Of a DNA stretch of 28,299 bases, positions 3,324-26,041 are shown piece by piece. The translations under genes were made by a program, and so were the position numbers. This DNA comes from Hyalangium minutum (GTDB lineage Bacteria > Myxococcota > Myxococcia > Myxococcales > Myxococcaceae): contig NZ_JMCB01000035.1 in assembly GCF_000737315.1 (NCBI RefSeq), positions 1-28,299 of the forward strand, written 5' to 3'. The notes below the pieces were generated by a model, which was not told the DNA's origin, searched no databases, and was given only the letters and a program-made list of their open reading frames with translations. Numbering within the stretch: position 1 is the stretch's first letter; each line of letters begins with the position of its first letter.

Positions 3324-3332
3324 CGTTCGCAC

Positions 3333-4520: not shown

Positions 4521-4529
4521 GCGACACGA

Positions 4530-7025: not shown

Positions 7026-7131
7026 GGCCGACCGTCCTTTGCCTTGTAGCGGCCGGAGAGTGTCGGTGATCATGTCGCACAGAGCGAGAAATCGTGCCCC
7101 GGCCCATGGGCAGCGCTACGGAATCAGCCGC

Positions 7132-7638: not shown

Positions 7639-7867
7639 CGGAGATCACCGATCCCTCCTATACCAGCGGCGGCAGCTGCCCAGCGGGGCGCAGCTGCCGC
7701 TACAGCGACAGCGCCTTCTTCAGTGCCAGCACCAGCGTCAGCCCGCTGGTGGCGATGACTCGTGCGGCGCGGGCTCCAACCCGTGGAACTTCGCCTTCGC
7801 CCCGTTGGGCTCCATCCAGAACGAGTTGGGGATTGTCCCCTACTGCCAGGGTTTCGTGGGCTGCTGA
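7639..7867 (+). pseudogene. 3' remnant of a Cys-containing, probably secreted protein, frameshifted
   Basis: Two frames join as ...TDPSYTSGGSCPAGRSCRYSDSAFFSAST... / ...DDSCGAGSNPWNFAFAPLGSIQNELGIVPYCQGFVGC*. The 5' part is replaced by the IS91-like remnant. Confidence 0.35.
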
Positions 7868-7890
7868 GCGGAAGCCACAGGCCGATCGGT

Positions 7891-8340: not shown

Positions 8341-8401
8341 CGTGTTGCTCCGTTGCGGAATTGAAAGACGTAGGGTTTGTGGACGCGCGCGCGCCCGGCG
8401 C

Positions 8402-8849
8402 TCAGTTGCAGGAGTACTGAGGGGCGAGCTCGAGGACGCGCTGCTCGGCGAGCGGGGAGAGCGCCCTCAGGCGGGAGAGGTAGAGAGGGGCCTTCATCCC
8501 CATGCCGATGAAGGACCGTATGAGCGCTCTTGAGCTACGGAGATCTCCTTCCGCTCGGCCTCCGTGAACGTACGCCCCGCGGCCTTCTCGAAGGTCTGCA
8601 GATCCAGCTCGAGCTGTGCGTTCAAAGTGGCCCGGAGCGCCTGGAGCAGCTCGGCGTACTCGGTCATGGCCGCCTCCAGCGTCTCGGGCGCCTGAGCGAG
8701 GATCTTCTGGGCCTCCAGGAAGTCGAGGCGGGTGTGCTGCGCCTCTTCGAGCCAGTGGTGCTTGAGTTGGGGAGCACGTCATCGAGCTTCCACGACGCGC
8801 GTTCGGAGCTTTGGATGCAAGACTGGTATTCGGAGTCGGTCTTGAGCAT
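8402..8849 (-). pseudogene. Ferritin-like diiron protein pseudogene (large internal deletion plus frameshifts)
   Basis: N-terminus MLKTDSEYQSCIQSSERASWKLDDVLP jumps in another frame to LKHHWLEEAQHTRLDFLEAQ (ExxH diiron motif) ...LDLQTFEKAAGRTFTEAE; a further shift occurs near 8530. Confidence 0.7.
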
Positions 8850-9114
8850 GGGCTGAGTGGATGATCACTGCGCTGCACATGTCAATGCAGGCGGATGGAG
8901 CCATTGGATTGCAGCAACGGGAGCAGATGGAGCGCTTCGGAGATCGGGCTGTGCACTGGGCCGGTGGAGCATCACCCTCCGAAGATGTACCTGCCCCTGC
9001 GGACGTGTCGTGTTCTCGTTGCCATTGGGGAATTGGAGGATCCACTGCCGGTAGGGCTTCGTGCTACGAGAGCCGTGGGGGGCGTGGCCGGTTCGCCCCT
9101 GGACTCGCAAGGCC

Positions 9115-10017
9115 ATGCGCACGGACATCCTTCCCGAGGAGCTCCTCGAGACGGTTCTCGGTTCGATGACGGCAGCCGCCGCGGAGCGGCTGCGTGCCGA
9201 GCCCGGCCTGCCTCAGGTACTCTCCCGGATATTCGCGGAGGCGGCCTCGCTTCGGAGCGTGGCGCCAGAGCCACTCGTGTTCGCGCGTCACTTGGGCGCG
9301 TGGCTCGCCGAGGCGGACGACCCCGCTCGCGTCCTGGAGCGCCTGCATGCGCGAGACCTGGCGCTCGCGCTCGCCTGTGCCCTGGAGACGCCCGGAGCCA
9401 CGGAGCTGCTCGAGGAGGAGGTCCTGGGCAGGCTGCGCGTGCCGCTCTCCCGCCTCCATCCCTCGCCCGCGTTCGTGGACGAGGTGCTCCAGACGCTCCG
9501 GGCGAACCTGCTCATGCCCCGGGCGGGAGGGCCGCCCCGGCTCATCGGCTATGCGGGCGTGGGCTCATTGTTCCACTGGGTGAACAGCGCGGGCGTGCGG
9601 CTCGCGCTGCGGATGCGCAAGGCGCATGGCCAGGAGGCCCAGGTGGATGCCGAGGTGCTGGCCGCGCATCCCGCCCAGGGAGGGCTGGAGCTGGGGCTGG
9701 TCCGCGAGGAGGCCCGCGCGCATGTGCGTGCCGCTTTCGTGCAGGCGGTGGCGTCACTCGATGACGAGGACCGGGAGCTCTTGCGCCTGCACTTCGTGGA
9801 GCGGCTTTCCCTGGAGCGGATGGGGACGCTGTACGGTCTGCACAAGTCGACCCTGTCCCGGCGGTTGTCCGGGGTACAGGCGCTGCTGGAAAAGCGCACG
9901 CGCCGGTGCCTGTCGGAGCGGCTGGCGCTCTCCTCGGAGGAATTGGACAGCGTGATGCGCGCTATCCACGGTCGCCTCGACCTGAGCCTGTCCGGGCTCC
10001 TGGCGGCGAAGGGATGA
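9115..10017 (+). CDS. ECF-like sigma-70 factor, Myxococcales family (TIGR03001-like)
   Basis: DLALALACAL...EVLQTLRANLL...YAGVGSLFHWV region 2; RELLRLHFVERLSLERMGTLYGLHKSTLSRRL region 4. ATGA overlap with the kinase gene. Confidence 0.85.
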   Translation: MRTDILPEELLETVLGSMTAAAAERLRAEPGLPQVLSRIFAEAASLRSVAPEPLVFARHLGAWLAEADDPARVLERLHARDLALALACALETPGATELLEEEVLGRLRVPLSRLHPSPAFVDEVLQTLRANLLMPRAGGPPRLIGYAGVGSLFHWVNSAGVRLALRMRKAHGQEAQVDAEVLAAHPAQGGLELGLVREEARAHVRAAFVQAVASLDDEDRELLRLHFVERLSLERMGTLYGLHKSTLSRRLSGVQALLEKRTRRCLSERLALSSEELDSVMRAIHGRLDLSLSGLLAAKG

Positions 10018-12677
10018 GCTGCCCAGACGAGAACGACCTCGCCCGCTACGTGAATGGCTTGCTGTCGGCCGAGCGTGAGCAGGCGGTGCGCTCCCATGTC
10101 ACCGGCTGTGGCGAGTGCCGGAGCGTGCTCGCCGCGCTGAGCGCTCTGGAGGAGCCGCCCCTCGCGCAGGGCGTGGGGCCGCTCGCCACGGGCACGCGGG
10201 TAGGGCGCTATGTGGTGCTGGGCCTGTTGGGCGAGGGCGGCATGGGCCGCGTCCATGTCGCGTACGACCCCGAGCTGGACCGCAAGGTGGCGTTGAAGCT
10301 GCTCAACCCGGAGCGGCTTCGCGGGGACTCGCTGGACCTGGCGCGACAGCGGCTGGAGCGCGAGGCCCGGACCATGGCGCGGCTGTCCCATCCCCATGTC
10401 GCCAGCCTCCATGACGTGGGCGAGTACGAGGGACAGCTGTTCCTGGTGATGGAGTTCGTGGAGGGAGGCACGCTGCGGAAGTGGCTGGCGGAACGTCCCC
10501 GCTCGCGCCGGGAGATCCTGGAGCGCTTCCTCCAGGCCGCGGACGGGCTCGCTGCCTCGCATGCGCTGGGCATCGTCCACCGCGACTTCAAGCCGGACAA
10601 CGTCCTGCTCACGAAGCCTGGCGTCGTCCGCATCACCGACTTCGGCCTGGCCCACGCGACGGCGGCGTCCGGGGAGGGGGCGGTGCTGGATGCCTCGGTG
10701 ACGAGCGACGCCCTCACCGTCACCGGGACCTTGCTGGGCACGCTGGCCTACGGCGCGCCCGAGCAGCTTCGTGGCGAGCGCGGCGATGCCCGCTCGGACC
10801 AGTTCTCCTTCTGCGTCGCGCTCTACGAGGCGCTCAATGGCCAGCGTCCCTTCGAGGGGACAACCCGGGAGGCGCTGCTGGAGGCGATGGCGCGTCAGGC
10901 CGTGCGGCCCGAACGGCCCGGGGTTCCGGTGTGGCTGCGGTCCGTGGTCCGCCGGGGGCTCTCCGCGGACCCGGCGAAGCGCTTCTCCTCCATGGGCGAG
11001 CTGCGCGCACGGCTCGCCCGGGACCCTGTCTCCCGATGGCGCAACGGGAGCCTGGCGGCGCTGGCGGTGGTCCTGGCCGTCGCGGTGCTGGGCGTACTTG
11101 CCCGGAGGGAGCCGCGCGAGCTGTGTCAGGGCAGCGAGCGGCACTTCGCGGGAGTCTGGGACGAGGCGGCCCGCGAGGCCCTCCACCGGGCGTTCCTGGC
11201 CACGGGCTCGCCAGACGCGGAAGCCTCCTTCGCGGCGGTGGCGGCGGCGCTGGAGCGCTGGAAGGAGGACTGGACGCGCGCGCACCAGGAGGCCTGCGAG
11301 GCCACGCGTGTCTGGGGGGAGCAGTCGGACCAGGTGCTGGGCCTGCGCATGGCGTGTCTCGATGAACGGCTGGGCGAGGTGAATCGCCTGGTGGCAGTGC
11401 TCCAGGGCGCGGACGCCCGCACGGTGGAGCGTGGCTTCGGCCTGGGGGCGTCCCTGACAAGCCTGCGGCGCTGCTCCGACGTGAGGACGTTGCAGGAGGC
11501 GGTGGCGCTACCCGAGGACCCGGTGGCCTTGGCGGAGGTGGCGGTCATCCGGGGGGAACTGGCGCGGGCGAACGCGGAGTTGCTCGCGGGGCGTACCCCG
11601 GAGGCCTTGAAGGGGGTGCTGGCCGCGCGGGAGCGCGCTGTGCGCACGCACTACCGCCCCTTGGAGGCGGAGGCCCACCTGCTGTGCTCGACGATTCAGT
11701 CGGATGCGAGCATGTTCGAAGCCGCCCGGGACTCCGCGGCACAGGCGGCCCTCGCGGCGGAAGCCGGGCGGCACCATGGCGTGCTGGCGCGGGCGCTCTA
11801 TGGCATGGCCTGGGTAACTGTGCATGGCCTGGGGCAGACGCGGGAGGCGTGGGCCCACCTCCAACGCGCCCAGGCCGTAGCGGAGCCGCTGCGAGACCCC
11901 GAGTTCGACGCGCTGCTGGACTATGTCCGCGCCGAGCTGCTCGAACAGGAGGGCCGCTTCGCCGAGGCGGAGCCCCTCCTGCGCGAGGCGCTCGACCGTG
12001 TCATCGCGAAGGGCGCGTCGCACGCCGCCACCCGCGCCGAGCTCACCGGGCGCCTGGGCCTGCTGGCCCGTCAGCAAGGACGGCTCCTCGAGGCGAAGCG
12101 ATGGCAGGAGGAGGCGGTTCGACTCCATGAAGAACTCCATGGCCCCGAGCATCGCGACACCGCGCGGGCGCTGGCGAACCTGGGGGGCACGCTGGGCTAC
12201 ACGGGAGAGTTTGCGCGCGCGGAGGCCGTCATCCAGCGGGCGCTCGTCATCCTCCAGCGCGTCCTGGGAGAGGAGCATCTGGCGGTGGTACGCACCCTGT
12301 CCAACCTGTCCTTCGTCTACTTCGAGTGGGGACATGGCCCCCAGGCGCGTGAGGCCGCGGAACGGGGCTTCGCGCTGGCGCACAAGAGCGTGGCCCCGGA
12401 TGCCGCAGCCTCTATGGTGACGCGGGCCTCGACCTGCGACGACTACAGCGACAGGCCGCTGAAAGATCCCTACACGGAGGTCTATTCCTTCGCCGTCCGC
12501 GGGGACGAACTCTTCACTCAGAGAGAGGAGGACGACCCGAAGGTCACCCTGCGCTGGAAGCGGGTGAGCGACCTGTGCGAGGCGTCCACCTCGTTCAAGT
12601 GCCGGGGACGAGGGTCGTGCTCCTGTGTCACCACGAAGAACAAGCCCCTGACGGGCCAGCAGAACTGCACCCTCTGA
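10014..12677 (+). CDS. Membrane Ser/Thr protein kinase (N-terminal zinc-finger-like motif, Pkinase, TM, TPR repeats) with a foreign C-terminal ~85 aa
   Basis: HVTGCGEC motif; LGEGGMGRV, VALK, HRDFKPDNVL, DFG, APE; TM near aa 345-365; TPRs. After about 12420 the sequence changes to an unrelated Cys-rich tail. Confidence 0.9.
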   Translation: MSCPDENDLARYVNGLLSAEREQAVRSHVTGCGECRSVLAALSALEEPPLAQGVGPLATGTRVGRYVVLGLLGEGGMGRVHVAYDPELDRKVALKLLNPERLRGDSLDLARQRLEREARTMARLSHPHVASLHDVGEYEGQLFLVMEFVEGGTLRKWLAERPRSRREILERFLQAADGLAASHALGIVHRDFKPDNVLLTKPGVVRITDFGLAHATAASGEGAVLDASVTSDALTVTGTLLGTLAYGAPEQLRGERGDARSDQFSFCVALYEALNGQRPFEGTTREALLEAMARQAVRPERPGVPVWLRSVVRRGLSADPAKRFSSMGELRARLARDPVSRWRNGSLAALAVVLAVAVLGVLARREPRELCQGSERHFAGVWDEAAREALHRAFLATGSPDAEASFAAVAAALERWKEDWTRAHQEACEATRVWGEQSDQVLGLRMACLDERLGEVNRLVAVLQGADARTVERGFGLGASLTSLRRCSDVRTLQEAVALPEDPVALAEVAVIRGELARANAELLAGRTPEALKGVLAARERAVRTHYRPLEAEAHLLCSTIQSDASMFEAARDSAAQAALAAEAGRHHGVLARALYGMAWVTVHGLGQTREAWAHLQRAQAVAEPLRDPEFDALLDYVRAELLEQEGRFAEAEPLLREALDRVIAKGASHAATRAELTGRLGLLARQQGRLLEAKRWQEEAVRLHEELHGPEHRDTARALANLGGTLGYTGEFARAEAVIQRALVILQRVLGEEHLAVVRTLSNLSFVYFEWGHGPQAREAAERGFALAHKSVAPDAAASMVTRASTCDDYSDRPLKDPYTEVYSFAVRGDELFTQREEDDPKVTLRWKRVSDLCEASTSFKCRGRGSCSCVTTKNKPLTGQQNCTL

Positions 12678-17468: not shown

Positions 17469-17966
17469 TCAACGCACGCGCGTCAGCGTCACGCAGCCCA
17501 GGAAGCGCGCCTTGCCGATCCGCTCCAGCGTGTGCCGGGCCGCGGAGAAGTGCGTGGACCCCAGTGGCACGCACAACAGCGCGCGCTCGCAGGCCAGCGC
17601 TACCTCGAGCCCCACCGGGTTCGTGAGGACCGAGTCGATGCAGGTGACGGTCCTCCCGCCCTGCTCCATGTACGAGCGGATGTCTCGCACGAGACGGGCG
17701 GCGGCTCCCGGCGGCAGGCCCTCGGCGTCGATCAGGCGGAGGGGCTTCTCGCGGTACTGCTTGCCCACCGAGAGGATGGCCTGCCCCGCTGCCAAGCCGG
17801 AGGTCCCCGGCTGCGCGGGTACCACCACCAGTGAGGACCACGGCTCGCGCTGGGTGAGCAGCGTCCACAGGTGGAGCAACTCGGTGGGAACCGGCTCCGC
17901 GGGAGCTGGGGAGAGCTCGCGGGGGAACGAGGGCGCTTCCGGGGCGAGGGGCAGCGGGGTGTACAT
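17469..17966 (-). CDS. Stand-alone Wze/BY-kinase-like (CpsD/CapB-like) polysaccharide co-polymerase partner, degenerate P-loop
   Basis: WSSLVVVPAQPGTSG (degenerate Walker A position), VTCIDS, ERALLCVPLGST...ARHTLERIG..RFLGCV pattern. Directly downstream of a sugar transferase. Confidence 0.55.
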   Translation of the reverse strand: MYTPLPLAPEAPSFPRELSPAPAEPVPTELLHLWTLLTQREPWSSLVVVPAQPGTSGLAAGQAILSVGKQYREKPLRLIDAEGLPPGAAARLVRDIRSYMEQGGRTVTCIDSVLTNPVGLEVALACERALLCVPLGSTHFSAARHTLERIGKARFLGCVTLTRVR

Positions 17967-18001
17967 GGGCCCGTCCAGTTCTTGATGTCGAATCTCAGGT
18001 G

Positions 18002-18773
18002 TTAGCTGGCACCACTTCCCGTAATGACCACGGGCACTGTCTTCAAGATCAGCCGCAGGTCTGTCAGCAGGGTCCAATTGTCGATGTACTGCATGTCCAA
18101 GTACATCCACTCGTCGAAGGAGATCTGGTTGCGGCCGGAGACCTGCCAGATGCAGGTGAGACCTGGGCGCACTGACAGACGCCGGCGCTGCCATGCAGCG
18201 TATTTTTCCACCTCCTTCGGAAGCGGCGGGCGCGGGCCTACCACGCTCATCTCACCGCGCAGTACATTGATCAGCTGCGGCAGCTCGTCGATGGAGTACT
18301 TGCGGATGAAGCGGCCGATCCGAGTGATTCTCGGGTCGTTCTTGATCTTGAACACGGGGCCGGTCTGCTCGCTGAGCGCCTCGAGCTTGGCGCGCAGCTC
18401 CTCGGCGTTCACCACGCCAGATAGCCCGCGACGTGGCGGCGGCCTCGCTTCCGCAGCGCCACGCCAGTCAGCCGGCCCATGGCGCCCACACCGAGGATGA
18501 GCGCCTCGTCTTCTCGAGGGGCCTCGCGCACCGCCAGCCAGCGGAACACCCTCTGCCGTAAGGCCCCCCACTCCAGGCTGCCCACGGAAGACTGTGGCCC
18601 AGCAGCACCGTGGAACCCAGCTGCGTTCCCATTACCAGGAGCAGGTCCACGAACAGGTTCAGCTTGGCGACAAAGCCACGAGCTGGCCGACCGTTCTCCG
18701 CCAGGGGCAAAGGTATGGGAGGAGGCTCCGGCGGGTAGTCCGGCAGGGGCCGATGTGCAGTGTTGGTATGCAT
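18002..18773 (-). pseudogene. Polyprenyl-phosphate hexose-1-phosphate transferase (PHPT, EpsZ/ExoE/WcaJ-like) pseudogene
   Basis: Intact Bac_transf C-terminus (FKIKNDPRITRIGRFIRKYSIDELPQLINVLRGEMSVVGPRP). The N-terminal TM piece (ATG 18773) and the ALILGVGAMGRL piece are in other frames, with the intervening domains deleted. Confidence 0.85.
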
Positions 18774-18801
18774 GGGTCGCCGCTCCCTCGCGGGGGGCCA
18801 G

Positions 18802-18817
18802 AGCACTGCTTGTGCCA
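18802..18817 (-). promoter_or_regulatory. Putative sigma54 -24/-12 promoter TGGCAC-AAGCA-GTGCT
   Basis: Correct N5 spacing, one mismatch to TTGC; about 30 bp upstream of the PHPT ATG. Confidence 0.6.
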
Positions 18818-19142
18818 GCCGTGCTCTCTCACCTATGCGCACCCTCGAAACGTCTGTTGGCCACTCCAGCGCGTGCTGGCGCCTGAAGGTGGGCTGCGGC
18901 GAAGCCCTTACGCCCGCGTTCAATGCCGACGCAGGGACGTCAGAAAGAGACGCTCCAAGGACTGACGCCAAGTCCCTGGAGTTACAGCGGCTTCTGGCAC
19001 ATCGTCCCAGAGGACGGGCGGTTTGCAGAAGCACGGAGTGGGCCGATTTCTCGGGCCTGGCACAGCAGGAGAAGCCGGAAACGAATACCGTCCTCTTCCT
19101 GGGCCGCTTCGTGAAGCCCTAGGCAGACCGTGAGCGCGGCGG

Positions 19143-20056
19143 TCAGGCCATCCCGCGCTGCTGGCGGGCCCACGTCTCGAAGCTCATGGGAGAGAGACCG
19201 TAGGATCGGGCGATCTCGGGTCGTGCCAGCACCGGGGCGACGTTCATGTACGTCAGTCCCTGCGCCACACCGGGATGCAGGCCGGCGGCGACGGCCTCCT
19301 CGACCGTGCCCACCTGCACTCGTACTCCTTGCCGTCGAGGCGCGAGAGTATCTCGGCGATCTGAGGAAGCGTGAGCAGGTCGCCGGCGAGCTGCAGCGTC
19401 ACACCTTTGAACCTGGCGGGATCGTTGATCGCCGCCGCGGCTGCCTTGCCGATGTCCTCCGGGGCGATGAGCCCAATGGGCCGATCAGTCCTGATCACCG
19501 TGACCAACTGGCGCCCGTCGGCGAAGCCGGCGGGATCGAACATGGGCTGGTCCATGAAGGTGGCGGGCAGGATGAGGGTCCAGTGCTCGAAGCCGGCGTT
19601 GCGCACGAGCTCGCAGGTAGCGAGCTTGTTCTCCCAGTAGTCCTCGTGGGACTTCCAGCGACCCTCGGCCCAGCCCTCGACGTTGCGGTGGTCGCCGACG
19701 CCCGATGTCGCGGTGTGCACGAACGTGCCGACGCCTTCGGTAAGCGCGGCCTCGACGAGGTTTTTTCCCTGCTCGCGCTCCTTGCTGTAGTCAACGCCGG
19801 TCGCGGAGAGAATGGGCGACTGCATCGAGAACACCGCCCGTGTCCCCGCGCAGGCGGCGCGCAGCGATCGCGGATCGTCGAGATCCCCGATGACCACCTC
19901 GGCGCCGGCCGCCGCGAGGGCCTTCGCGTTCGGCGCGTCCGGGTTGCGCACCATTACCCGCACCGATGTGCTGCCTTCGGCCAGCAGCGCCCGGGCGGTG
20001 GCGCCGCCCTGTCGCCCTGTGGCGGCGGTGACGAGAACGGGATCGCTGCTGCTCAT
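19143..20056 (-). pseudogene. Second NmrA-family protein with a -1 frameshift near 19318
   Basis: VLVTAATGRQGGATARALL. After ...DGKEYE the natural tail (VQVGTVEEAVAAGLHPG...SFETWARQQRGMA*) is in another frame ending at 19143. Confidence 0.85.
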
Positions 20057-20069
20057 GCGGGCCTCCTGT

Positions 20070-20127
20070 AAGTGGGGTGCCCCACCGTTTAGACTTCGGT
20101 GGCAAGATATGGAGGGCCACCCCGTTT
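20070..20127. promoter_or_regulatory. Two related 21-bp imperfect palindromes (20070-20090 and 20107-20127), candidate TetR operators
   Basis: AAGTGGGGTGCCCCACCGTTT vs ATATGGAGGGCCACCCCGTTT, 15/21 identical, in the divergent NmrA/TetR spacer. Confidence 0.6.
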
Positions 20128-20145
20128 GTCGAGGAGAGGATCTCC

Positions 20146-20754
20146 GTGGATCGTGTGAAGACGTTGCGAGCGGACGGCCGACGCAACCGAGAGCGGATCG
20201 TCGCCGCCGCCGCAGAGCTGGTCGCCAGGGATGGCGCGCAGGCGTCGCTCGAGGAGATCGCGCGGCGGTCGGGGGTGGGCTCCGCGACCCTGCACCGGCA
20301 CTTCCCGTCGCGGCGGGCGCTGTTGGAGGCGGTATTCCGCGCCGGCGTCGCGCAGCTCTGTGCGCGGGCCGCCGTGCAGCCGGGCGAGGACCCCGGCGCT
20401 GAGCTGGCTGCCTGGCTCGAGGAGCTGACAGTCTACACGGCGACCCACCGCGGACTTGCCGCTGCCCTGCTGGCCGGCCCGGATGGCCTCTCGCCAGAAG
20501 AGCTCTGCTGCACCGACATGCTGCTCGACGTGATGGAGGTTCTGGTGGCACGGGCCTCGTCTGTGGGCGCGCTTCACGCCGTCGCCACGACGAAGGACCT
20601 GATGCTCTTGGCGAACGCGATTGCCGTCGCCACCGAAGACGATCCGGCCACCGCGAGCCGGCTGCTGCGCCTCGCGCTCACCGGCATACGGTCTGAAAAC
20701 CGGAACGGTCCCCCTTCTCGGCCGGGCCGGGCTCGGGCGCCGACGAAGAAGTAG
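20146..20754 (+). CDS. TetR/AcrR-family regulator (LRADGRRNRERI type)
   Basis: LRADGRRNRERIVAAAAELV...SLEEIARRSGVGSATLHRHFPSR. GTG start after GAGGAG. Confidence 0.92.
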   Translation: MDRVKTLRADGRRNRERIVAAAAELVARDGAQASLEEIARRSGVGSATLHRHFPSRRALLEAVFRAGVAQLCARAAVQPGEDPGAELAAWLEELTVYTATHRGLAAALLAGPDGLSPEELCCTDMLLDVMEVLVARASSVGALHAVATTKDLMLLANAIAVATEDDPATASRLLRLALTGIRSENRNGPPSRPGRARAPTKK

Positions 20755-20759
20755 GCTCT

Positions 20760-20788
20760 CGCGCTCTCCGCTGTCGACGGAGAGCGCG
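20760..20788. terminator. 11-bp perfect hairpin CGCGCTCTCCG-7-CGGAGAGCGCG between convergent genes
   Basis: Seen directly, 6 bp after the TetR stop; lacks a U-tract. Confidence 0.5.
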
Positions 20789-20860
20789 CCCGCCGCGTCA
20801 ACTACCCTCCAGGCCCCATGCCCTGCCACCGCTTGGAGGCCTTTGAGAAGGCGCCCAGGC

Positions 20861-21604
20861 TCAGGCCGCCGCGCTCAGCGAAGTCCAGGTGCCTTGCGCA
20901 GCGCTCAGGCAGTCCCCCAGGAAGCGCAGGTAGCAGTCCAGCCCCTTGGCGCCGATGGATGCCAACTTGTGGGCATGCGCAGGCTCTGGGGTGATGGCCT
21001 CCTCCATCATCCGCTCATTGAGGGCCGTGTGGCCGACATCCACCGCGGCGTGCTCCTTGAGGAAGGAGAGCTGATCCATGGCCTCGCGTCCGAGCACCCG
21101 GGTGACTTGCGCGAGGATTCGCGGCACCAACTCCACCGCCAGGTAGCCCACCTCGTACTCGATGGCCGCCTGGCCGATCGGCAGATCGCTCGCGATCGTG
21201 TCGTCATGCAGCTGACGGTAGGCCCGCATCGCCTCCGTGGGGGCCTGGGTGATCAGCGCATCCGCGTCGAGCTGCTGCGCGTAGCGCGTGTTCCAGCGGC
21301 GCACCAGCACGCGCGTGTCCTCGATGGTCATCAGGTGGTGTCCGGCCTCGTGCCGCGAGTGGGTGATGAGCCCCCGGCCGAGCTTCTCCTGCCCCAGCGC
21401 GATGCAACGCTCGCCCGCGCCGCGGATCCATCCTTCTACGGGCTCGGTCATGTACGCCCCGCGCGCGGACCACTCGATCATGAAGCGCTCCAGCAGGGCG
21501 GGGGAGATATCGGGGGACAACAGGGTGCGCACCACCGGCTCCGTCTCCAGCCGGGCGCGGGTCTCCAGGACGTGAGGCAGGTACATCGTCTTCATCAGGT
21601 TCAT
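20861..21604 (-). CDS. Heme-oxygenase-like diiron oxidase (iron-containing redox enzyme, CADD/TenA-like fold)
   Basis: HEAGH, IEYE and H-x3-D-x2-H (EHAAVDVGH) metal-ligand motifs; all-helical 247 aa. ATGA overlap with the upstream gene. Confidence 0.8.
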   Translation of the reverse strand: MNLMKTMYLPHVLETRARLETEPVVRTLLSPDISPALLERFMIEWSARGAYMTEPVEGWIRGAGERCIALGQEKLGRGLITHSRHEAGHHLMTIEDTRVLVRRWNTRYAQQLDADALITQAPTEAMRAYRQLHDDTIASDLPIGQAAIEYEVGYLAVELVPRILAQVTRVLGREAMDQLSFLKEHAAVDVGHTALNERMMEEAITPEPAHAHKLASIGAKGLDCYLRFLGDCLSAAQGTWTSLSAAA

Positions 21605-23433
21605 GACAGCTCCTTCTCAGCGGAGGTGGGCAGACGGCCTGCTGTCTGCGTGTGGATGTGCTCCAGGAAATCGGGGGCGAGCTCCGCGGCGATGAGCCAG
21701 AGGTACGGCCGCGCAGCGCCATGAGCGACGTGGCTGTTGAGCCCGTCCTCTTGCATGAAGACGAAGGTGTCGCGGCCGCGGCTTGCGTACCACTGGCGCG
21801 CCGCGTCCAGCAGCGCCTCACGGGCCTCCCCTGTCTCGGGAGCCAGCGGGAAGAGGCGCACGGCATCCAGCAGGCGGAAGGGGTTGGCCCCGCGCTGGCC
21901 CACCTCCAGCACCGCCGCCGCGAGCGGTCTGCCCTGATGGCGTGCGACCAGGATGTGCCGCTCCCGCTCCAGCCCGGCTTCACGCCAGGCTCCGGCTGCG
22001 GCCTCCAGCTCCAAGGACTCCGCGCTCAGATCCAGGGCTTCGAGGTAGCTGGCAGGGCGCAGGCGGGCGAGCTTGCGGGCGAGCAGTGCCTGCTCGAAAG
22101 GTGTCGCTGGACCGAGCGTCATCCCCACTGGGAGCGCCTTACGAGGCTCCGCACAGGAGACGTCCACCATCCGCAGGGGAAGCAGAAGCGTCCGGCCCGT
22201 GCCGGCCATCCGGCGCGCGAAGCCGCTGTGCACGCGGTGGACGAAAGGCACAGTTCCCTCGATGTAAGCTCCCAGCCACCGGAAGCCGGGGTCACCCTGC
22301 GCGTGCTCCACCGTCCGGACATAGAGATCCCGGAGGATTCTTCCCGTGGTGATCGGCGAGGGCGCGCTTCCCGGCCGCTTCGCCAGTTGGTGGACCAGCC
22401 ACAGCGATTGGTATGGCTTCATGGAGGCGAGCGTCGCCTCCACACCGCGAGCAGAAGGCCACGCCGCCAGACACATCAGCTGCGGCAGGTGTGCGGCACG
22501 CCGGCCCAGTTCGAGGAAGCTGGCGCGCTGGTCCTCGAACCACTCCGCCGAGTGGCTGGCCAGGTTGAAGTAGCCCGAGTCGATGAAGAGCTGCCACAAC
22601 GGCTCCACCAGGCTCCCATCTGTCCTCGTGGCGGGGCAGAGCGAGCGAGTGACGAGCTCTCTCCAGCGCTCCGTATCCAGGCCCGTGAGCGGCTCCACCC
22701 GCAGGCCACAGACGCTCGTTCCCTCCGCGGTGACGGACACGTGACGGATCTCGGCACGCAGGTGAATGGGCTTCCCGGCCTCCGTGAGGAGCACGCATGC
22801 TGACAGCACCCAGCCAGGCTCGAGCCGCTCCCCTGGCAGGAGCCGCACACCCAGCCCACCGAAGGAGACATCGAGCACCTCGCGCTCCCACTCGGATCCG
22901 GAGTGAAGTGGCAGGACGAGACGTGTAGCGGGCGGGGGCGAGACACGCCGGTAGAGGCGGTGGCGGACGCGGACGAGGCGGTCCGGCAGTGGCGTTCGGA
23001 GCTGCTCCCCCTCCCAGGTGCCCTCCTGCAGGCGCATGCGATAGACCGAGTTGTAGCCCGCCACCTCGGCCTCGTACGGGAGCGAGCCTTCGCTCTCAGC
23101 GAGTGCGGCGCATCGCCAGCGAAGGCACCTGGACTTGAGATCGACCTGCTCCAGCACCAGGCGAGTGGCCCGTCCGTTCCGGCGCAGAAGGCCCCGGCCT
23201 CCCAGGGAGGCGGCAGTCATGAGGGCCAACTGGATGCGCTCTGGCTCGACGAGTTCTTCATGGAAGCGCGCGGGCCCGCTCGCGCGATCAGGAGTGCTCT
23301 GCGCTTCCCCTCGGAGGAGAGCTCCACCTGTTGACGAGGGAGAGACCCTCTCGTAGGGCACGGTGTCGGCGAGCGGATCCAGCTTCGACCGCGTCTCTTC
23401 GATGAGATCGTGGGTCCACAGGTGCGGTGACAT
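21601..23433 (-). CDS. PilZ-domain protein with C-terminal acyl-CoA N-acyltransferase (GNAT-like) region; PixB-like architecture
   Basis: RLYRR (RxxxR) and DVSFGG (DxSxxG) PilZ motifs, followed by a GNAT-like C-terminal half. Start 23433 has GGGA upstream; 23442 is an alternative. Confidence 0.75.
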   Translation of the reverse strand: MSPHLWTHDLIEETRSKLDPLADTVPYERVSPSSTGGALLRGEAQSTPDRASGPARFHEELVEPERIQLALMTAASLGGRGLLRRNGRATRLVLEQVDLKSRCLRWRCAALAESEGSLPYEAEVAGYNSVYRMRLQEGTWEGEQLRTPLPDRLVRVRHRLYRRVSPPPATRLVLPLHSGSEWEREVLDVSFGGLGVRLLPGERLEPGWVLSACVLLTEAGKPIHLRAEIRHVSVTAEGTSVCGLRVEPLTGLDTERWRELVTRSLCPATRTDGSLVEPLWQLFIDSGYFNLASHSAEWFEDQRASFLELGRRAAHLPQLMCLAAWPSARGVEATLASMKPYQSLWLVHQLAKRPGSAPSPITTGRILRDLYVRTVEHAQGDPGFRWLGAYIEGTVPFVHRVHSGFARRMAGTGRTLLLPLRMVDVSCAEPRKALPVGMTLGPATPFEQALLARKLARLRPASYLEALDLSAESLELEAAAGAWREAGLERERHILVARHQGRPLAAAVLEVGQRGANPFRLLDAVRLFPLAPETGEAREALLDAARQWYASRGRDTFVFMQEDGLNSHVAHGAARPYLWLIAAELAPDFLEHIHTQTAGRLPTSAEKELS

Positions 23434-23490
23434 GGTGATCATTCCCAGCGGGGACGAAGGAGAGCGTTCGTCCTCGTGCGCACCGTCTTC

Positions 23491-23507
23491 AGCACGGCGC
23501 GTGCCAA
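23491..23507 (-). promoter_or_regulatory. Putative sigma54 -24/-12 promoter TTGGCAC-GCGCC-GTGCT
   Basis: Correct spacing, about 58 bp upstream of the PilZ-GNAT start; same GTGCT variant as at 18802. Confidence 0.65.
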
Positions 23508-23758
23508 TCGCTTGCCACCGGACTCGAAGGCCCTTTGGTAAGGGCCGCTATCGCGGTTTCCGAGGGGAATGGTGCAGTTCACCTGGGCCCAACAGGTGCC
23601 GGAACGAGGCGCGGCTGCGTGGTGAGACTACGCAGCCGCGTGTTCACGACACGCGCGGCTCACCTGTGGAGGGCACGGACAGCTTGCTCCAGCCCTCATT
23701 TCTGACCGGCAGGATGGCTACAACCCTGCCGGCCGTTCACCGGCTTCGCAGTGCTGCC

Positions 23759-26041
23759 TTAGGGAGCATAGAGCTCCGCAGAGCTGAAGATGACGCCTCC
23801 CGAGAGGAGCACCTTGCCGGTGGGCAGCAGAGTCAGGCTGTGCGAATAGCGACTCGTTTGCATGGAACTCGTGAGCTCCCAGGTTCCCACTGCAGGATCG
23901 TACAGCTCCGCCGAGGCATGGGCCCCGTTGATGGAGCGGCCTCCGGCGACGAGCACCTTGCCCGAGAGCAGCAGCGTCACGGCGGTCTGGTAGCGGGGGA
24001 CACTCATGGAGCCGGTGGTGACCCAAGTGCCGCTATCCGGGTCGTACACCTCTGTCGCTGCCGAGGTGGTCGATCCGCCAAGGACGAGCACCTTGCCGGA
24101 GGGCAGCAGCGTGGCAATGTGGTCCTCGCGAGACTGAGTCATGGAGCCGGTGGGCGTCCAGGTACCCGTGTTCGGGTCGTACAACTCCGCCGAGGAATGG
24201 AAGGGCTCTCCGCCAGTCACGAGCACCTTGCCGGAGAACAGAAGCGTCGCGGTATGGTCACTGCGGGCATCGTGCATGGAGTTCGTGGCGGTCCAGGTTC
24301 CCGTAGCCGGGTCATACACCTCCGCGGTTGCTGCGTAGTCGGTCGAGTACCCTCCCACCACCAGCACTTTTCCAGAGGGCAGCAGCGTCGCGGTGTGGCC
24401 ACCACGCGCATGGTTCATGGTGCCGGTCGACGTCCAGGTTCCCGTGGCAGGGTCATACAGCTCCGCCGTTGCCTGATAGGTGTCCGAGTACCCTCCGGTG
24501 ACAAGGACCTTTCCAGATTGCAGGAGCGTCGCTGTGTGACTCACGCGGGGGATGCTCATCGCGCCCGTGGCCATCCATGTGCCAGTTTCCGGATCGTACA
24601 TCTCCGCTGTCTCCAGGAGTGAGCCGGTCCAAAGCCCTCCGCCAGTCACGAGCACCTTGCCAGAGGACAAGGTCGTCGCGGTGTGCCAGTACCGAGCCTG
24701 GGAAGGGGAAGAGGTGGCAGTCCAGGTGCCGGACAGGGCGCAGGAAGCCAGTCCGGTAATGGTAAAGGTGCGGGTGGCGGTCAAACCAACGCCGTTGGTG
24801 ACGGTAGCAGTGACAGGGGCGGTGCCGCCGTCTGGCACGCAGGTGGGCGCTGTCCACGTGACACGGCTTCTGGTGGCCGAGTCCTCAGACTGGCCCAGCG
24901 CGCCCACAGGGGAACTCCAGGCGAAAGAGAGCAGGCTGTTCGTCAGGTCGCTGGCTACCACCTCGAAGACGAGGAGCTGAGAGGGCGTCGCCGTGAGTGC
25001 GGACTGATAGGAGCGCACGATGATGGGAGGCAAGGAGAGGGGGGACGCCGGAGACACGCACAAGGCCAGGGTGGCGGTCGCATGGCCGCCGCGCTCGTCG
25101 GAGACCTCCACCTGCACTTGGCAGTTGTTGCAGGAGTGAGCGGGCAGTGCAGTGGGAGAGAAGCGGGCCGTGGACATATTTGGGTTCTCCCACGTGCCCA
25201 GGCAGGAGGCGCTCCACTGGTAGCGGAGTGCATCTCCGTCACCATCCGAGGCGGAGACGGAGAGTTCCGTCTGCTCGCCTACAGCCAAAGAGGACTGAGA
25301 TGAGGAGAGGTTCGTCACAACGGGGCGGTTGTTGAAGCGCACGTCCAGAATCACGTCGCCTTGCCCGGCAGAGACGTTCACCGTGAAGGACACCGAGGTG
25401 GCAGCTCCGTGCGAGTCGATCACAGTGAGCGCGAGCTGCACTGGACCCAAGGTGGCCGGAGCGTTCCAGGTGGTGCTGGCCTGGGTGGGCGCGGAGAAGA
25501 TGCCTGACGGTGCTGTCCACTCGTACTCCAGGGAGTCGCTCTGGTTGGGATCATGCGCGCTTGCCATCAATGACACACTCTCGCCGGGGGCTACGACCAG
25601 AGGCGAGGCCACCATTGAGTCAATCAGCGGAGCCTCGTTCGTGTAGGGCTCTTCGGCGGCGCTCTCGTGAAGAGTGAGGGTGATGAGTGACATCTCCGAT
25701 GCCCCGATGGTGACACCTGTGGAATGTCCCTCATAGAGCAGAGTGTCTGCTGGCCCGAAGGCCTGGGCCAGGAATGCGCGGCCGGTACCAGCCGGGATGT
25801 TGCCGACGACTCCTCCCCACACCCCATTCGTTTTCACCAGCTCGGTGACGATGGAGGGCATGTCCGCTGCGGAGGAAGTGACGGTCACGCGTGAGATGTC
25901 ATTGGCGGAGAGGGTGTGGCGCGTGGACACGGCCAACTGCACCGAGCCAGTAGCGCGCGCGGACGCAGAGGAACTCTCATGACAGCCGGCGAGCAGTGCC
26001 CACAACAGGAATAGGACATAGAGGGGACGTGATAGAGGCAT
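23759..26041 (-). CDS. Kelch-repeat lipoprotein with N-terminal Ig/PKD-like domains
   Basis: Lipobox LLAGC; repeated NxxP...Y.W beta-sandwich units; seven R..HTATLL.SGKVLV.GG kelch blades. Confidence 0.92.
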   Translation of the reverse strand: MPLSRPLYVLFLLWALLAGCHESSSASARATGSVQLAVSTRHTLSANDISRVTVTSSAADMPSIVTELVKTNGVWGGVVGNIPAGTGRAFLAQAFGPADTLLYEGHSTGVTIGASEMSLITLTLHESAAEEPYTNEAPLIDSMVASPLVVAPGESVSLMASAHDPNQSDSLEYEWTAPSGIFSAPTQASTTWNAPATLGPVQLALTVIDSHGAATSVSFTVNVSAGQGDVILDVRFNNRPVVTNLSSSQSSLAVGEQTELSVSASDGDGDALRYQWSASCLGTWENPNMSTARFSPTALPAHSCNNCQVQVEVSDERGGHATATLALCVSPASPLSLPPIIVRSYQSALTATPSQLLVFEVVASDLTNSLLSFAWSSPVGALGQSEDSATRSRVTWTAPTCVPDGGTAPVTATVTNGVGLTATRTFTITGLASCALSGTWTATSSPSQARYWHTATTLSSGKVLVTGGGLWTGSLLETAEMYDPETGTWMATGAMSIPRVSHTATLLQSGKVLVTGGYSDTYQATAELYDPATGTWTSTGTMNHARGGHTATLLPSGKVLVVGGYSTDYAATAEVYDPATGTWTATNSMHDARSDHTATLLFSGKVLVTGGEPFHSSAELYDPNTGTWTPTGSMTQSREDHIATLLPSGKVLVLGGSTTSAATEVYDPDSGTWVTTGSMSVPRYQTAVTLLLSGKVLVAGGRSINGAHASAELYDPAVGTWELTSSMQTSRYSHSLTLLPTGKVLLSGGVIFSSAELYAP

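Follow-up and report, generated by a model that had tools for sequence, protein, structure and literature searches.

A conserved gene pair of Myxococcota sets a predicted c-di-GMP receptor-acyltransferase beside a heme-oxygenase-like oxidase

What might a bacterium do with a putative c-di-GMP receptor that is fused to a predicted acyltransferase and directly followed by a heme-oxygenase-like oxidase? This question is raised by a locus of the myxobacterium Hyalangium minutum (contig NZ_JMCB01000035.1, positions 1 to 28,299; this whole stretch of 28,299 nucleotides is hereafter the window), in which two genes, here called A and B, lie head to tail.

21601..23442, minus strand: gene A, intact ORF of 613 aa with an ATG start
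20861..21604, minus strand: gene B, intact ORF of 247 aa with an ATG start, encoding a heme-oxygenase-like di-metal oxidase/oxygenase (HDO)
21601..21604, minus strand: ATGA stop/start overlap of genes A and B (the plus strand reads 'tcat')

Both genes carry the coding signature of a GC-rich genome (GC3 of 0.81 for gene A and 0.90 for gene B), and gene A has a second conserved ATG at 23433 (MSPHL...). The initial annotation had described two intact genes joined by an ATGA overlap, which is borne out by the ORFs and by the junction. This overlap, which implies translational coupling of the two genes, is also present in clade-A loci and is replaced by a short overlap or a gap in other clades.

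Gene A, for which 64 homologues were collected (top identity 93%), starts with a disordered N-terminus that is followed by PilZN-like, PilZ and tandem-GNAT domains, as seen in an AF2 model (pLDDT 84.8, pTM 0.84).

22990..23271, minus strand: YcgR-N/PilZN-like beta-barrel, residues ~58-151 (Foldseek and secondary structure of the AF2 model)
22669..22980, minus strand: PilZ domain, residues ~155-258 (Pfam PF07238)
22945..22971, minus strand: c-di-GMP motif 1, RVRHRLYRR (R158-R166), which contains R162xxxR166 (family conservation)
22855..22872, minus strand: c-di-GMP motif 2, DVSFGG (D191-x-S193-x-x-G196; family conservation)
22153..22620, minus strand: N-lobe of the predicted tandem GNAT, residues ~275-430 (AF2 topology, Foldseek, invariant columns)
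21637..22125, minus strand: C-lobe of the predicted tandem GNAT, residues ~440-602 (AF2 model, Foldseek, invariant columns)

The N-terminal half of the protein is predicted to be a YcgR-type c-di-GMP receptor module (PilZN+PilZ). PF07238 matches residues 162-258 with 30.2 bits (cutoff 22.5), a PilZ match being found in 37 of 48 family members, and Foldseek alignments of 209-222 columns cover YcgR (5y6f), PP4397 (3kyf) and MrkH (5kgo) in full length, with E = 3e-10 to 1e-9; over the set of receptors that also includes MotI, E is 3e-10 to 1e-8 and the target-normalised TM 0.56-0.72. The RxxxR and DxSxxG motifs, which had been reported as intact, are indeed kept in 40-41 of the 41 PilZ-bearing members: R160, R162 and R166 in 40-41 (R165 in 37), the Asp of motif 2 in all 41, its Ser and Gly in 40 each. 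Gene A thus has in common with YcgR, MrkH, PP4397 and MotI an N-terminal module of two barrels, in which RxxxR lies in the linker and DxSxxG in the PilZ barrel itself, but these receptors work via protein-protein or DNA contacts, whereas the module of gene A is joined covalently to an enzyme domain. Versions of gene A that lack PilZ (L005, L007, L008, L016) still keep their HDO partner, which makes PilZ look like a regulatory addition to a core that is catalytic.

The C-terminal half, which had been called GNAT-like, matches no Pfam, NCBIfam or PDB sequence model, and an acyltransferase fold is visible in the AF2 model and Foldseek only (E = 5e-8 to 1e-4 against tandem-GNAT structures). The GNAT assignment therefore rests on one AF2 model, by which this half is predicted to be a tandem-GNAT acyltransferase of a family that lies outside the sequence models. 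The N-lobe, with an alpha-alpha-beta-beta-beta-alpha-beta-alpha-beta topology and invariant W283, S289, G290, Y344, W348, H351 and Q352, matches the tandem GNATs 2wpw, 5kf1 and 7q3a, VipF, Eis-like proteins and FemX, while the C-lobe contains an invariant GLERER...VAR block (R493, R495, R501) together with E513, N520, D526 and R529. Judging from the invariant columns and the AF2 model, neither lobe has a clear canonical Q/RxxGxG/A loop for acyl-CoA. Known tandem GNATs such as the clavulanic acid cluster ORF (2wpw), the Clostridium glucosamine N-acetyltransferase (5kf1), MAB_4324, VipF and Eis-like enzymes have the same two-lobed fold (alignments of 340-360 columns, E = 5e-8 to 1e-6), but they are only 8-18% identical to gene A and have no sequence family in common with it, and TM values of 0.37-0.49 indicate that the gene A lobes are oriented differently.

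For gene B we are confident, on the strength of its AF2 model (pLDDT 94.4) and of the structures that this model matches, of a heme-oxygenase-like fold, and we read it as a UndA/CADD-like HDO with the following motifs.

21335..21361, minus strand: HDO ligand motif 1, HSRHEAGHH (H82-H90), which contains E86-x-x-H89 (conservation)
21152..21160, minus strand: candidate carboxylate ligands E149 and E151 (IEYE), each in 52 of 52 homologues
21029..21052, minus strand: HDO ligand motif 2, H185-x3-D189-x2-H192 (conservation)

Pfam PF14518 scores 18.8 bits, under its 28.9 cutoff; profiles match 3dde and CADD, and Foldseek gives TM 0.66-0.71 to 3dde, UndA (4wwj/6p5q), CADD (8vag/1rcw) and 3oql. H82, E86 and H89 are invariant in the 52 homologues, and H185, D189 and H192 are found in 52, 51 and 49 of them. 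The six candidate metal ligands (E86, H89, E149/E151, H185, D189 and H192) thus show little or no variation, which is what a catalyst would lead one to expect. The CADD-type H-x3-D-x2-H motif noticed in the initial annotation is confirmed, since it aligns with the EHEEADVRH segment of CADD. UndA and its homologue PSPTO1738 have the same fold (TM 0.66-0.71) and the same ExxH ... HxxxDxxH ligand pattern, and the 1-alkene-forming UndA is an earlier example of an enzyme that uses O2 to decarboxylate a carboxylic acid oxidatively, although it is 15-17% identical to gene B and acts on free fatty acids, without a GNAT partner. The Chlamydia protein CADD (CT610), a self-sacrificing p-aminobenzoate synthase, is also alike in fold (TM 0.68-0.69, or 0.77-0.78 target-normalised) but is only 14-15% identical and belongs to folate metabolism rather than to a GNAT pair; no conserved Lys donor like that of CADD was seen in gene B. 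The closest solved structure (E = 2e-6, TM 0.71-0.75) is that of Sden_3740 (3dde), with which gene B has an HxxxExGHxLM motif in common (motif 1 aligns as H-A-x-x-E-x-G-H-x-L-M); this is a structural-genomics protein of unknown function, so the likeness gives no mechanistic information.

Across Myxococcota the pair is conserved. Of 83 loci scanned, 76 have a homologue of gene A immediately upstream of the HDO (in two of these, L014 and L015, only an AT remnant of gene A is left), and six of the seven apparent exceptions have homologues that are full-length but very divergent (profile E = 1e-14 to 1e-30). With three loci added to the count (L084, L085, L086), and including the very divergent versions and two decayed copies, the A-then-B adjacency is seen in 84 of 84 Myxococcota loci with readable upstream DNA, which settles in favour of conservation the neighbourhood question raised at the outset; a metagenome contig (P0012) even has an in-frame A-B fusion. 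This adjacency persists between classes of Myxococcota whose proteins are 30-45% identical and whose flanks differ; the flanks also differ among the clade-A loci examined (the window, L003, L084, L085). No transporter, acyl-activating enzyme or tailoring gene is consistently linked to the myxobacterial pair, apart from synteny in Myxococcaceae, where the clade-B copy lies with a divergent HATPase-like gene, probably by descent. Many of the neighbours had been described as decayed, a view that finds little support in the window: domain matches are full-length for the TetR, Kelch/PKD, P-type ATPase, Ser/Thr kinase and LPG-synthase-TM genes on the flanks. The exceptions are the adjacent NmrA gene, which covers profile positions 4-238 of 298 only and has an odd C-terminal tail, and one sugar-transferase fragment that looks frameshifted.

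How the pair might be transcribed is suggested by the DNA around it.

23491..23507, minus strand: candidate sigma-54 (-24/-12) promoter CTGGCACGCGCCGTGCT, ~50 nt upstream of the ATG at 23442
23610..23660, no strand assigned: conserved block with two overlapping inverted repeats (I1, I3), ~105-155 bp upstream of the -24 element
23449..23476, minus strand: conserved 5'-leader hairpin GAGGACGAA...TTCGTCC (inverted repeat I2), just upstream of the start codon
20760..20788, no strand assigned: perfect 11-bp GC-rich hairpin (a separate inverted repeat I1), between gene B and a convergent TetR gene

The -24/-12 box that had been proposed upstream of the pair (TGGCACGCGCCGTGC, 23492-23506, minus strand) is recovered, and five closely related orthologous loci have a box of this type at an identical offset while neighbouring sequence has diverged; a scan of orthologous loci did not find it outside the closest clade. 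TGGCACG-N5-TGC, a pattern picked after the site was seen, has one occurrence in the window where 0.09 would be expected, and among random 480-nt windows taken from the loci 0.23% reach a score of at least 11/12. The upstream block, which is near-invariant in the window, L084, L085, L003 and L004 despite differing upstream genes (DNA fold z = -2.2), is a candidate binding site for an enhancer-binding protein; no activator gene was found among the window ORFs scanned. The arms of the leader hairpin are kept in five loci, with an unexceptional fold energy (z = -1.1). The hairpin downstream of gene B has no T-tract and was not called by the terminator scan; it is a possible bidirectional terminator. 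In the window and its nearest relatives, these sequence features suggest that the pair is probably transcribed from a sigma-54 promoter with an upstream activator site.

A different line of evidence comes from other phyla, where the same HDO subfamily (46-57% identical to the Myxococcota members) lies beside, or is fused to, unrelated small GNATs in all eight non-Myxococcota loci: five in cyanobacteria (L079, L087, L088, L089, L091), one in Binatia (L090), one on an unassigned metagenome contig (L093), and one (L092) in which the HDO is fused to part of a small GNAT. These small GNATs have weak FeeM, Acetyltransf_5 or exosortase-acyltransferase matches, and in three cyanobacterial loci the genes follow the order aromatic ammonia-lyase, AMP ligase (CoA ligase), GNAT, HDO, with tailoring or shikimate-pathway genes in addition. 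Profile comparison found no relation between them and the myxobacterial GNAT domain, so the cross-phylum argument is one by analogy. The idea of an N-acylated small-molecule product, put forward in the initial annotation, gains independent support from these clusters. In N-acyl-tyrosine pathways, the known enamide-forming step is catalysed by the flavoenzyme FeeG, CndG or HyeB, not by an HDO (PMC11959600). What is comparable is the succession of an N-acyl amino acid synthase and an oxidative enzyme; what differs is that this enzyme is a flavoenzyme decarboxylase there (PMC11959600) and an HDO here, and that the GNAT of myxobacteria does not resemble FeeM in sequence.

Our best explanation, to which in its full form we give an even chance, is that the pair forms one translationally coupled cassette, a c-di-GMP-gated acyltransferase plus an HDO, in a small-amide pathway. 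In this scheme, (i) the GNAT domain would use an activated acyl donor to form an amide, either an N-acyl amino acid or an N-acyl amine, (ii) the oxidase would then transform it with O2, for example by UndA-like oxidative decarboxylation or desaturation, or by N- or C-oxygenation, oxidase-first supply of the amine or acid partner being the less likely order, and (iii) c-di-GMP bound at the RxxxR/DxSxxG site of the N-terminal module would gate the acyltransferase allosterically.

The obvious comparison is PixB (MXAN_2604), the one PilZ-GNAT protein that has been studied. This Myxococcus xanthus protein has a PilZ-PilZ-GNAT architecture; its acetyltransferase domain governs reversals as well as development, and it is thought to affect motility and development perhaps via protein acetylation (PMC8316039). 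Both are myxobacterial proteins with a c-di-GMP-receptor module N-terminal to a GNAT-fold acyltransferase, and the same logic is proposed for both, c-di-GMP boosting acyltransferase activity. PixB, however, has two PilZ domains, a Pfam-detectable GNAT, a motif 2 without the Ser and no reported HDO partner, whereas gene A, with its PilZN+PilZ module, retains that Ser and ends in a tandem GNAT undetected by sequence models. The M. xanthus counterpart of gene A adjoins icd (MXAN_3537), does not lie at MXAN_2604, and is absent from the 24 PilZ proteins studied. Orthology is therefore rejected on locus and architecture, and PixB, which the initial annotation had brought in, stands as an architectural analogue. 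The cAMP-regulated mycobacterial protein acetyltransferase (cNMP-binding domain plus GNAT) cited as an analogy for PixB (PMC8316039) similarly fuses a nucleotide second-messenger receptor to a GNAT under allosteric control, but its messenger and its receptor fold are different ones, it has only one GNAT, and its substrate is a protein lysine.

A PixB-like role would have the GNAT acetylate proteins, possibly the HDO, on c-di-GMP, with the HDO fold as O2/iron/redox sensor or target. It is suggested by the architecture (PMC8316039), by the protein and aminoglycoside acetyltransferases (VipF, Eis-like) among the top fold matches and by the HATPase-like synteny, and a pair that stands alone in variable contexts, with no linked transporter, activating or tailoring gene, would also fit regulation; we nevertheless consider it unlikely, because the HDO metal ligands are so well kept, the subfamily sits in biosynthetic-looking clusters with small FeeM/Acetyltransf_5-like GNATs in other phyla, and gene A is not a PixB orthologue. 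Quite unlikely, in our view, is a scheme in which the HDO comes first, making an amine or acid block (for example an arylamine, as with CADD, or an amino acid tailored by oxidation) that the GNAT then N-acylates. CADD is among the closest folds, with an aligned HxxxDxxH, and uses a Tyr of its N-terminal helix as substrate; an N-terminal Tyr (Y8) is invariant in gene B homologues, and the cyanobacterial lyase and ligase would supply an activated cinnamoyl-type acyl donor for which an amine acceptor would be needed. Against this, gene B homologues showed no invariant Lys that would correspond to the amino donor of CADD, and UndA and Sden_3740 are equal or closer in fold; the GNAT-first gene order of Myxococcota and of the cyanobacterial clusters is uninformative.

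Matches to FemX (1ne9, 1xe4, 7z6a) and to the aminoacyl-tRNA-dependent peptide synthase Sba18 (9wqy), with E = 2e-5 to 8e-5, and the UniRef name 'BioF2-like acetyltransferase' of one gene A homologue, would allow a two-lobed GNAT that takes an amino acid from aminoacyl-tRNA and passes it to a small molecule, a peptide or a lipid, and an HDO that then tailors the product. This is improbable, since acyl-CoA-dependent tandem GNATs score ~1000-fold better in Foldseek, FemAB/Acetyltransf_6 Pfam matches are found in 0 of 48 members, and the partner GNATs in other phyla are single-domain and NAS-like. That the genes are independent, their overlap devoid of functional meaning, would require adjacency by descent only; within-family synteny can persist through inheritance, but we find this very hard to believe of an adjacency that outlasts its changing flanks across classes, of which two different fusions exist, and which has unrelated GNATs recruited beside the same HDO subfamily in other phyla.

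In conclusion, the GNAT-HDO association across phyla favours a small-molecule acyltransferase-plus-oxidase cassette that would be c-di-GMP-gated in Myxococcota, where the pair probably makes a small amide under second-messenger control.

The two genes are intact open reading frames on the reverse strand, joined, as the initial annotation had stated, by an ATGA stop/start overlap (the plus strand reads 'tcat'):

21601-23442 (-): gene A, intact ORF of 613 aa
20861-21604 (-): gene B, intact ORF of 247 aa
21601-21604 (-): ATGA overlap of genes A and B

GC at third codon positions is 0.81 in gene A and 0.90 in gene B, as is typical for real genes of a genome of ~68% GC. The closest relatives are uncultured or Hyalangium sequences, the best matches of gene A being 93%, 85% and 76% identical to it, and those of gene B 96% to 86%. 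Among the matches listed, the named homologues of both genes all come from Myxococcota, except contigs labelled Comamonas. In two of these (L016 and L068, deposited as Comamonas sp. KCTC 72670), both of the paralogous pairs described below occur in a Myxococcaceae-type version, and their heme-oxygenase-like di-metal oxidases (HDO) share 72% and 49% identity with gene B; the contigs probably belong to a mislabelled or contaminated assembly.

The only Pfam domain in gene A is PilZ (PF07238, 30.2 bits with a cutoff of 22.5, over residues 162-258), and both c-di-GMP motifs are conserved in the family alignment:

gene A, residues 158-166: c-di-GMP motif 1, RVRHRLYRR (R162xxxR166)
gene A, residues 191-196: c-di-GMP motif 2, DVSFGG (D191-x-S193-x-x-G196)

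In this 48-member alignment, R160, R162, R166, D191, S193 and G196 are kept in 40-41 of the 41 PilZ-bearing members, and R165 in 37/41, which bears out the earlier reading of intact RxxxR and DxSxxG motifs. The AlphaFold2 model built on the same alignment (pLDDT 84.8, pTM 0.84), in which disorder is limited to residues 1-55 and two short loops, places a beta-rich domain resembling a YcgR-N/PilZN barrel (residues 58-151) before PilZ. In a Foldseek search against the PDB, residues ~58-258 match full-length YcgR, PP4397, MrkH and MotI (E = 3e-10 to 2e-8), which are PilZN+PilZ c-di-GMP receptors, and the alignments of 209-222 columns cover nearly all of the 226-235-residue chains of YcgR, PP4397 and MrkH, for which E is 3e-10 to 1e-9. 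With its PilZ match, predicted PilZN barrel and two c-di-GMP motifs, gene A has the make-up of a YcgR-type receptor, and is predicted to bind c-di-GMP.

The C-terminal half of gene A is modelled as a GNAT at the fold level, but belongs to an unclassified family by sequence. Residues ~275-600, where pLDDT is mostly >90 and the GNAT alpha/beta fold is duplicated, match tandem-GNAT structures (probability 1.00, E = 5e-8 to 1e-4), the best of which (E = 5e-8 to 1e-6) are clavulanate-cluster 2wpw, the glucosamine N-acetyltransferase 5kf1, MAB_4324, VipF and Eis-like proteins. Pfam returns no GNAT family at E <= 1 for any of the 48 family members, and searches in NCBIfam, PDB phmmer and PDB profiles gave no GNAT match. 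The GNAT-like half that had been proposed is therefore recovered by structure prediction and by none of the sequence models tried, and its assignment rests on a single predicted structure. Twelve residues of the domain are invariant (W283, S289, G290, Y344, W348, H351, Q352, D471, E513, N520, D526 and R529), as is a GLERER...VAR block (R493, R495 and R501). GNATs bind the acyl-CoA pyrophosphate through a Q/R-x-x-G-x-G/A loop between beta4 and alpha3; approximate, variably conserved matches to it occur in the N-lobe (K355-R-P-G358-S-A360) and the C-lobe (P535-E-T-G538-E-A540), and a canonical loop is not evident.

Gene B scores under the Pfam cutoff for Haem_oxygenas_2 (PF14518, 18.8 against 28.9 bits), a family for which ~30 of the 120 gene B homologues among the matches listed have a precomputed match. 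Its AlphaFold2 model is all-helical (pLDDT 94.4) with the seven-helix heme-oxygenase-like fold, and Foldseek aligns it at TM 0.66-0.71 with UndA, the UndA homologue PSPTO1738 (3oql), CADD and, as the closest solved structure, Sden_3740 (3dde), a protein of no assigned function, and more weakly with TenA, PqqC, HrmI, AetD and heme oxygenase. Residues H82, E86, H89, E149, E151 and H185 are invariant in 52/52 homologues, while D189 is kept in 51/52 and H192 in 49/52. Profile alignment places H185-x3-D189-x2-H192 on the CADD segment EHEEADVRH, and HEAGHH on the 3dde segment HEEAGHE. Judged by these alignments, gene B displays the three-His, three-carboxylate ligand pattern of an HDO (E86, H89, E149 or E151, H185, D189 and H192), in agreement with the heme-oxygenase-like diiron oxidase and the H-x3-D-x2-H motif recognised at the outset.

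How general the pair is was judged from a scan for HDO relatives with one genome per species, which gave 183 relatives and 80 retained loci, or 83 with three loci already in hand. A tblastn homologue of gene A lies directly upstream of the HDO, on the same strand, in 76 of these 83, and ends at, or <= ~100 nt from, the HDO start; among the 76, L014 retains only a short remnant of the acyltransferase domain, and in L015 the match covers part of this domain. L078 is a 1.3-kb contig that ends inside the acyltransferase domain. The seven loci with no tblastn match to that domain were rejected as exceptions to adjacency. One (L079) is a cyanobacterial contig, and the other six, from Polyangia, Sandaracinaceae and other Myxococcota MAGs, hold divergent homologues, that is, ORFs of 474-600 aa upstream of the HDO that match the family profile mostly near full length (E = 1e-14 to 5e-30). 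Addition of the two closest metagenomic loci (L084 and L085) and of a fusion locus (L086) brings the Myxococcota set to 85 loci, and the pair is present in all 84 with readable upstream DNA, the outcome of the adjacency check that the initial annotation had put forward. An 846-aa read-through ORF in L072 was discarded as a fusion, being an alternative-frame artefact; an in-frame PilZ-GNAT-HDO fusion (P0012) is found on one metagenome contig, a single case in which an assembly indel is possible. The observation made from sequence alone is genuine and far stronger than chance would give, and its interpretation is largely on target, with the chemistry and regulation standing as proposals.

The flanking genes of the window, L084, L085 and Hyalangium gracile are wholly unlike one another, which indicates that the conserved unit consists of two genes only. 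In the flanks compared, TetR and NmrA hold no conserved position beside the pair, and the myxobacterial pair has no consistently linked accessory genes beyond a synteny with icd, HATPase and FAD-monooxygenase genes that is limited to Myxococcaceae clade B, one of two paralogous clades. Many genomes contain both clades. Gene A homologues are ~580 aa in clade A, which includes the window, and ~700 aa in clade B, owing to an extra N-terminal domain. Some clade-A members (loci L005, L007, L008 and L016, and proteins P0048-P0057) have lost the PilZ module and kept the GNAT-HDO pair. Altogether, the PilZ-tandem-GNAT family comprises at least 420 clusters at 50% identity (profile E <= 1e-30), and is near-universal in Myxococcia, often as two paralogous copies.

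A separate observation concerns the gene immediately upstream of gene A, which encodes a Kelch/PKD lipoprotein. Homologues of the N-terminal half of this protein (residues ~19-510, 33-36% identity) follow the HDO directly, in the same orientation, in six Archangium/Vitiosangium loci:

23759-26041 (-): Kelch/PKD lipoprotein gene of the window
~8950-10440 (+) in L019, L020, L022, L026, L029 and L034: Kelch/PKD homologues

The gene may be a third partner with loose linkage to the pair, or the arrangement may be coincidental, the family of paralogues being large.

The model organism M. xanthus has a member of its own, a gene A homologue of 716-758 aa followed by a 250-aa HDO, two genes from icd, which retains RIRHRWHRR and DLSFSG:

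L001/L002, 5725-8753: M. xanthus pair

Within Myxococcaceae, copies of this type keep their synteny with a gene for a divergent HATPase-like protein of 187 aa and with a FAD monooxygenase gene in convergent orientation. Since icd is MXAN_3537 (PMC2875238) and no MXAN_353x gene was included when 24 PilZ proteins were systematically deleted in M. xanthus (PMC8316039), this member appears to be an overlooked and unstudied PilZ-type protein. It is distinct from PixB (MXAN_2604), which has two PilZ domains, a Pfam-recognisable GNAT and no motif-2 Ser, and which may share an operon with two downstream genes (PMC8316039). The gene A family has a different architecture, and its M. xanthus member sits near MXAN_3537 with one downstream gene. 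Judged by the published description of PixB, orthology is rejected on locus position and architecture, and gene A is therefore an architectural analogue of PixB.

The initial annotation had also placed the pair under a sigma-54-type promoter, for which the hallmark is GG and GC dinucleotides 10 nt apart in TGGCAC-N5-TTGC upstream of a gene. The upstream region contains three elements of note:

23492-23506 (-): candidate sigma-54 (-24/-12) box, TGGCACGCGCCGTGC, one mismatch to TGGCAC-N5-TTGC
23610-23660: candidate activator site, two overlapping GC-rich inverted repeats ~105-155 bp upstream of the -24/-12 box
23449-23476: 5'-leader hairpin just before the gene A start codon, conserved in five orthologous loci

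Matches with <=2 mismatches are not above chance in this GC-rich window (19 observed vs 31.7 expected), and TGGCACG-N5-TGC, found once vs 0.09 expected, is a pattern picked after seeing the site. Conservation is more telling, for a 17-nt element, CTGGCA(C/T)GC(G/C)CCGTGCT, keeps its offset in five orthologous loci (the window, L084, L085, L003 and L004), among which the preceding 30 nt diverge, and sigma-54 scores >=11/12 are reached by 0.23% of 480-nt stretches drawn at random from the loci. The 23610-23660 block is near-invariant in the same five loci although their upstream genes differ, and its position suits a candidate site for an enhancer-binding protein; the window ORFs scanned include no enhancer-binding activator gene. 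Most other clades have no comparable site, and three Corallococcus-type loci have weaker ones (9-10 of 12). Sigma-54 control from the candidate box is thus plausible for the Hyalangium-type sub-clade of these five loci. The leader hairpin, whose stability is not significant (z = -1.1), could be a translational element. Scans for promoters and terminators detected no sigma-70 promoter or T-tract (intrinsic) terminator, and 20000-24200 contains no Rfam family.

The picture of an intact island among decayed neighbours, which was part of the same annotation, is not borne out for the immediate flanks. Full-length domain matches were obtained for TetR, Kelch/PKD, P-type ATPase, Ser/Thr kinase and LPG-synthase-TM genes, while the NmrA gene (19253-20551) matches positions 4-238 of the 298 in its profile only and has an odd C-terminal tail. 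The sole case that looks frameshifted is a sugar-transferase fragment (Bac_transf, 18002-18571, matching from profile position 61), which overlaps same-strand ORFs in other frames (17469-18194 and 18468-19034); either a frameshift in the gene or an error in sequencing may account for the region 17469-19034 (-). Elsewhere in the window, a TetR regulator (20077-20754, +) is divergently paired with the NmrA-like gene (-) within 19253-20754, and a further NmrA-like gene is found at 1454-2380. In 9061-12677 (+), a Ser/Thr protein kinase carries a zf-HC2 (anti-sigma-type) motif at its N-terminus and TPRs at its C-terminus; the ORF ahead of it matches sigma-70 region 4, and this stretch has a GC content (0.71-0.74) markedly above its flanks (0.60-0.65). 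No PADLOC defence model matched.

The most telling result comes from beyond Myxococcota. L079 is a genuine low-GC cyanobacterial contig, whose HDO shares 46% identity with gene B; next after it comes a GNAT of 218 aa that matches Acetyltransf_1, Acetyltransf_7 and FeeM weakly. With the HDO of L079 as query, seven further non-myxobacterial loci were inspected:

L087 (Nostoc commune): HDO, then the same 218-aa GNAT as in L079
L088 (Symploca), 582-7773: aromatic ammonia-lyase, AMP ligase, 229-aa GNAT, HDO, Trp-halogenase-like enzyme
L089 (Nostoc CENA67), 1-9947: lyase, ligase, 225-aa GNAT, two HDO copies, glyoxalase, tyrosinase, chorismate mutase, prephenate dehydrogenase
L091, 399-8046: DAHP synthase, lyase, ligase, 228-aa GNAT, HDO, O-methyltransferase
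L090 (Binatia) and L093: HDO and GNAT of 226-255 aa with a 4-nt overlap
L092, 6001-7851: 361-aa HDO with the N-terminal half of a GNAT as C-terminal extension, the other half being in the next ORF

The GNAT of L090 and L093 matches Acetyltransf_5 (28.5 bits, cutoff 22.4) and, weakly, FeeM. The extension in L092, ~100 residues long and homologous to the first half of an Acetyltransf_5-type GNAT, reflects either an HDO-GNAT fusion broken by a frameshift or an assembly error. In L090, the gene immediately upstream of HDO-GNAT (1945-2568) encodes a protein of 207 aa, rich in NPCAA(K) repeats and predicted to be membrane-bound or secreted, and the protein at this position in L093 is unrelated. This HDO subfamily is thus linked to a GNAT in 8/8 non-myxobacterial loci inspected, and has at least three types of GNAT as partners, between which profile comparison finds no relation; the small GNATs of other phyla were rejected as homologues of the myxobacterial domain (hhalign probabilities <1%). 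In a midpoint-rooted NJ tree, the myxobacterial HDOs, with their tandem-GNAT partner, separate from the others, with their small-GNAT partners.

Replacement of the GNAT beside the same HDO subfamily argues that the two enzymes act on one small molecule, and from the lyase-ligase clusters an acyl-CoA would be the donor and an N-acyl amide the intermediate. L088, L089 and L091 look like an undescribed type of lyase-ligase-GNAT-HDO biosynthetic cluster, with cinnamoyl- or coumaroyl-CoA as the predicted acyl donor and a product derived from an N-cinnamoyl or N-coumaroyl compound. The reading that we favour, to which we give about even confidence, is that the myxobacterial pair is a c-di-GMP-gated acyltransferase-plus-oxidase cassette making an oxidised amide. 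UndA is a precedent among HDOs for oxidative decarboxylation, a reaction that would turn an N-acyl amino acid into an enamide. The enamide pathways that are known use the flavoenzymes FeeG, CndG or HyeB (PMC11959600), and an HDO route would therefore be new. Unlike FeeM-FeeG, the window pair includes no flavoenzyme, and its GNAT has no FeeM or Acetyltransf_5 match in Pfam or NCBIfam, such matches being confined to the partner GNATs of other phyla. The literature that we searched gave no account of such a GNAT-HDO pair.

Several rival explanations bear on this reading. By analogy with PixB, gene A might be a protein acetyltransferase with the HDO as sensor or target, which we consider unlikely. 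Somewhat less likely again is that the HDO acts first and makes the acceptor. That gene A is a Fem-like aminoacyl-tRNA transferase seems improbable, FemX and an aminoacyl-tRNA-dependent synthase being weaker Foldseek matches (2e-5 to 8e-5) than the best tandem GNATs, and the absence of any functional link between genes A and B is hardly credible given how faithfully the two occur together.

Returning to the favoured cassette, a broader and distinctly speculative extension, which we rate as unlikely as it stands, is that GNAT-HDO cassettes of Myxococcota, Cyanobacteria, Binatia and others make an unrecognised class of oxidised N-acyl amides, for example enamides or alkenes, if N-acyl amino acids underwent oxidative decarboxylation of the UndA kind, which needs no flavin. 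Direct activation of the first enzyme, the GNAT, by c-di-GMP would in myxobacteria turn the second messenger into a diffusible or membrane lipid-like signal with a bearing on motility or development.

For HDO enzymology, the cross-phylum partnership with GNATs indicates a new substrate class, in an easily expressed two- to four-gene system. As for c-di-GMP signalling, effectors that are themselves small-molecule synthesis enzymes are, to our knowledge, rare, and myxobacteria are organisms whose social behaviour is under c-di-GMP control. The M. xanthus copy, being outside the set of 24 PilZ deletions, offers a genetically tractable test. If the proposal is true, a PilZ-gated acyltransferase coupled to an O2-activating di-metal oxidase would tie the level of a second messenger directly to the output of a metabolite or signal.
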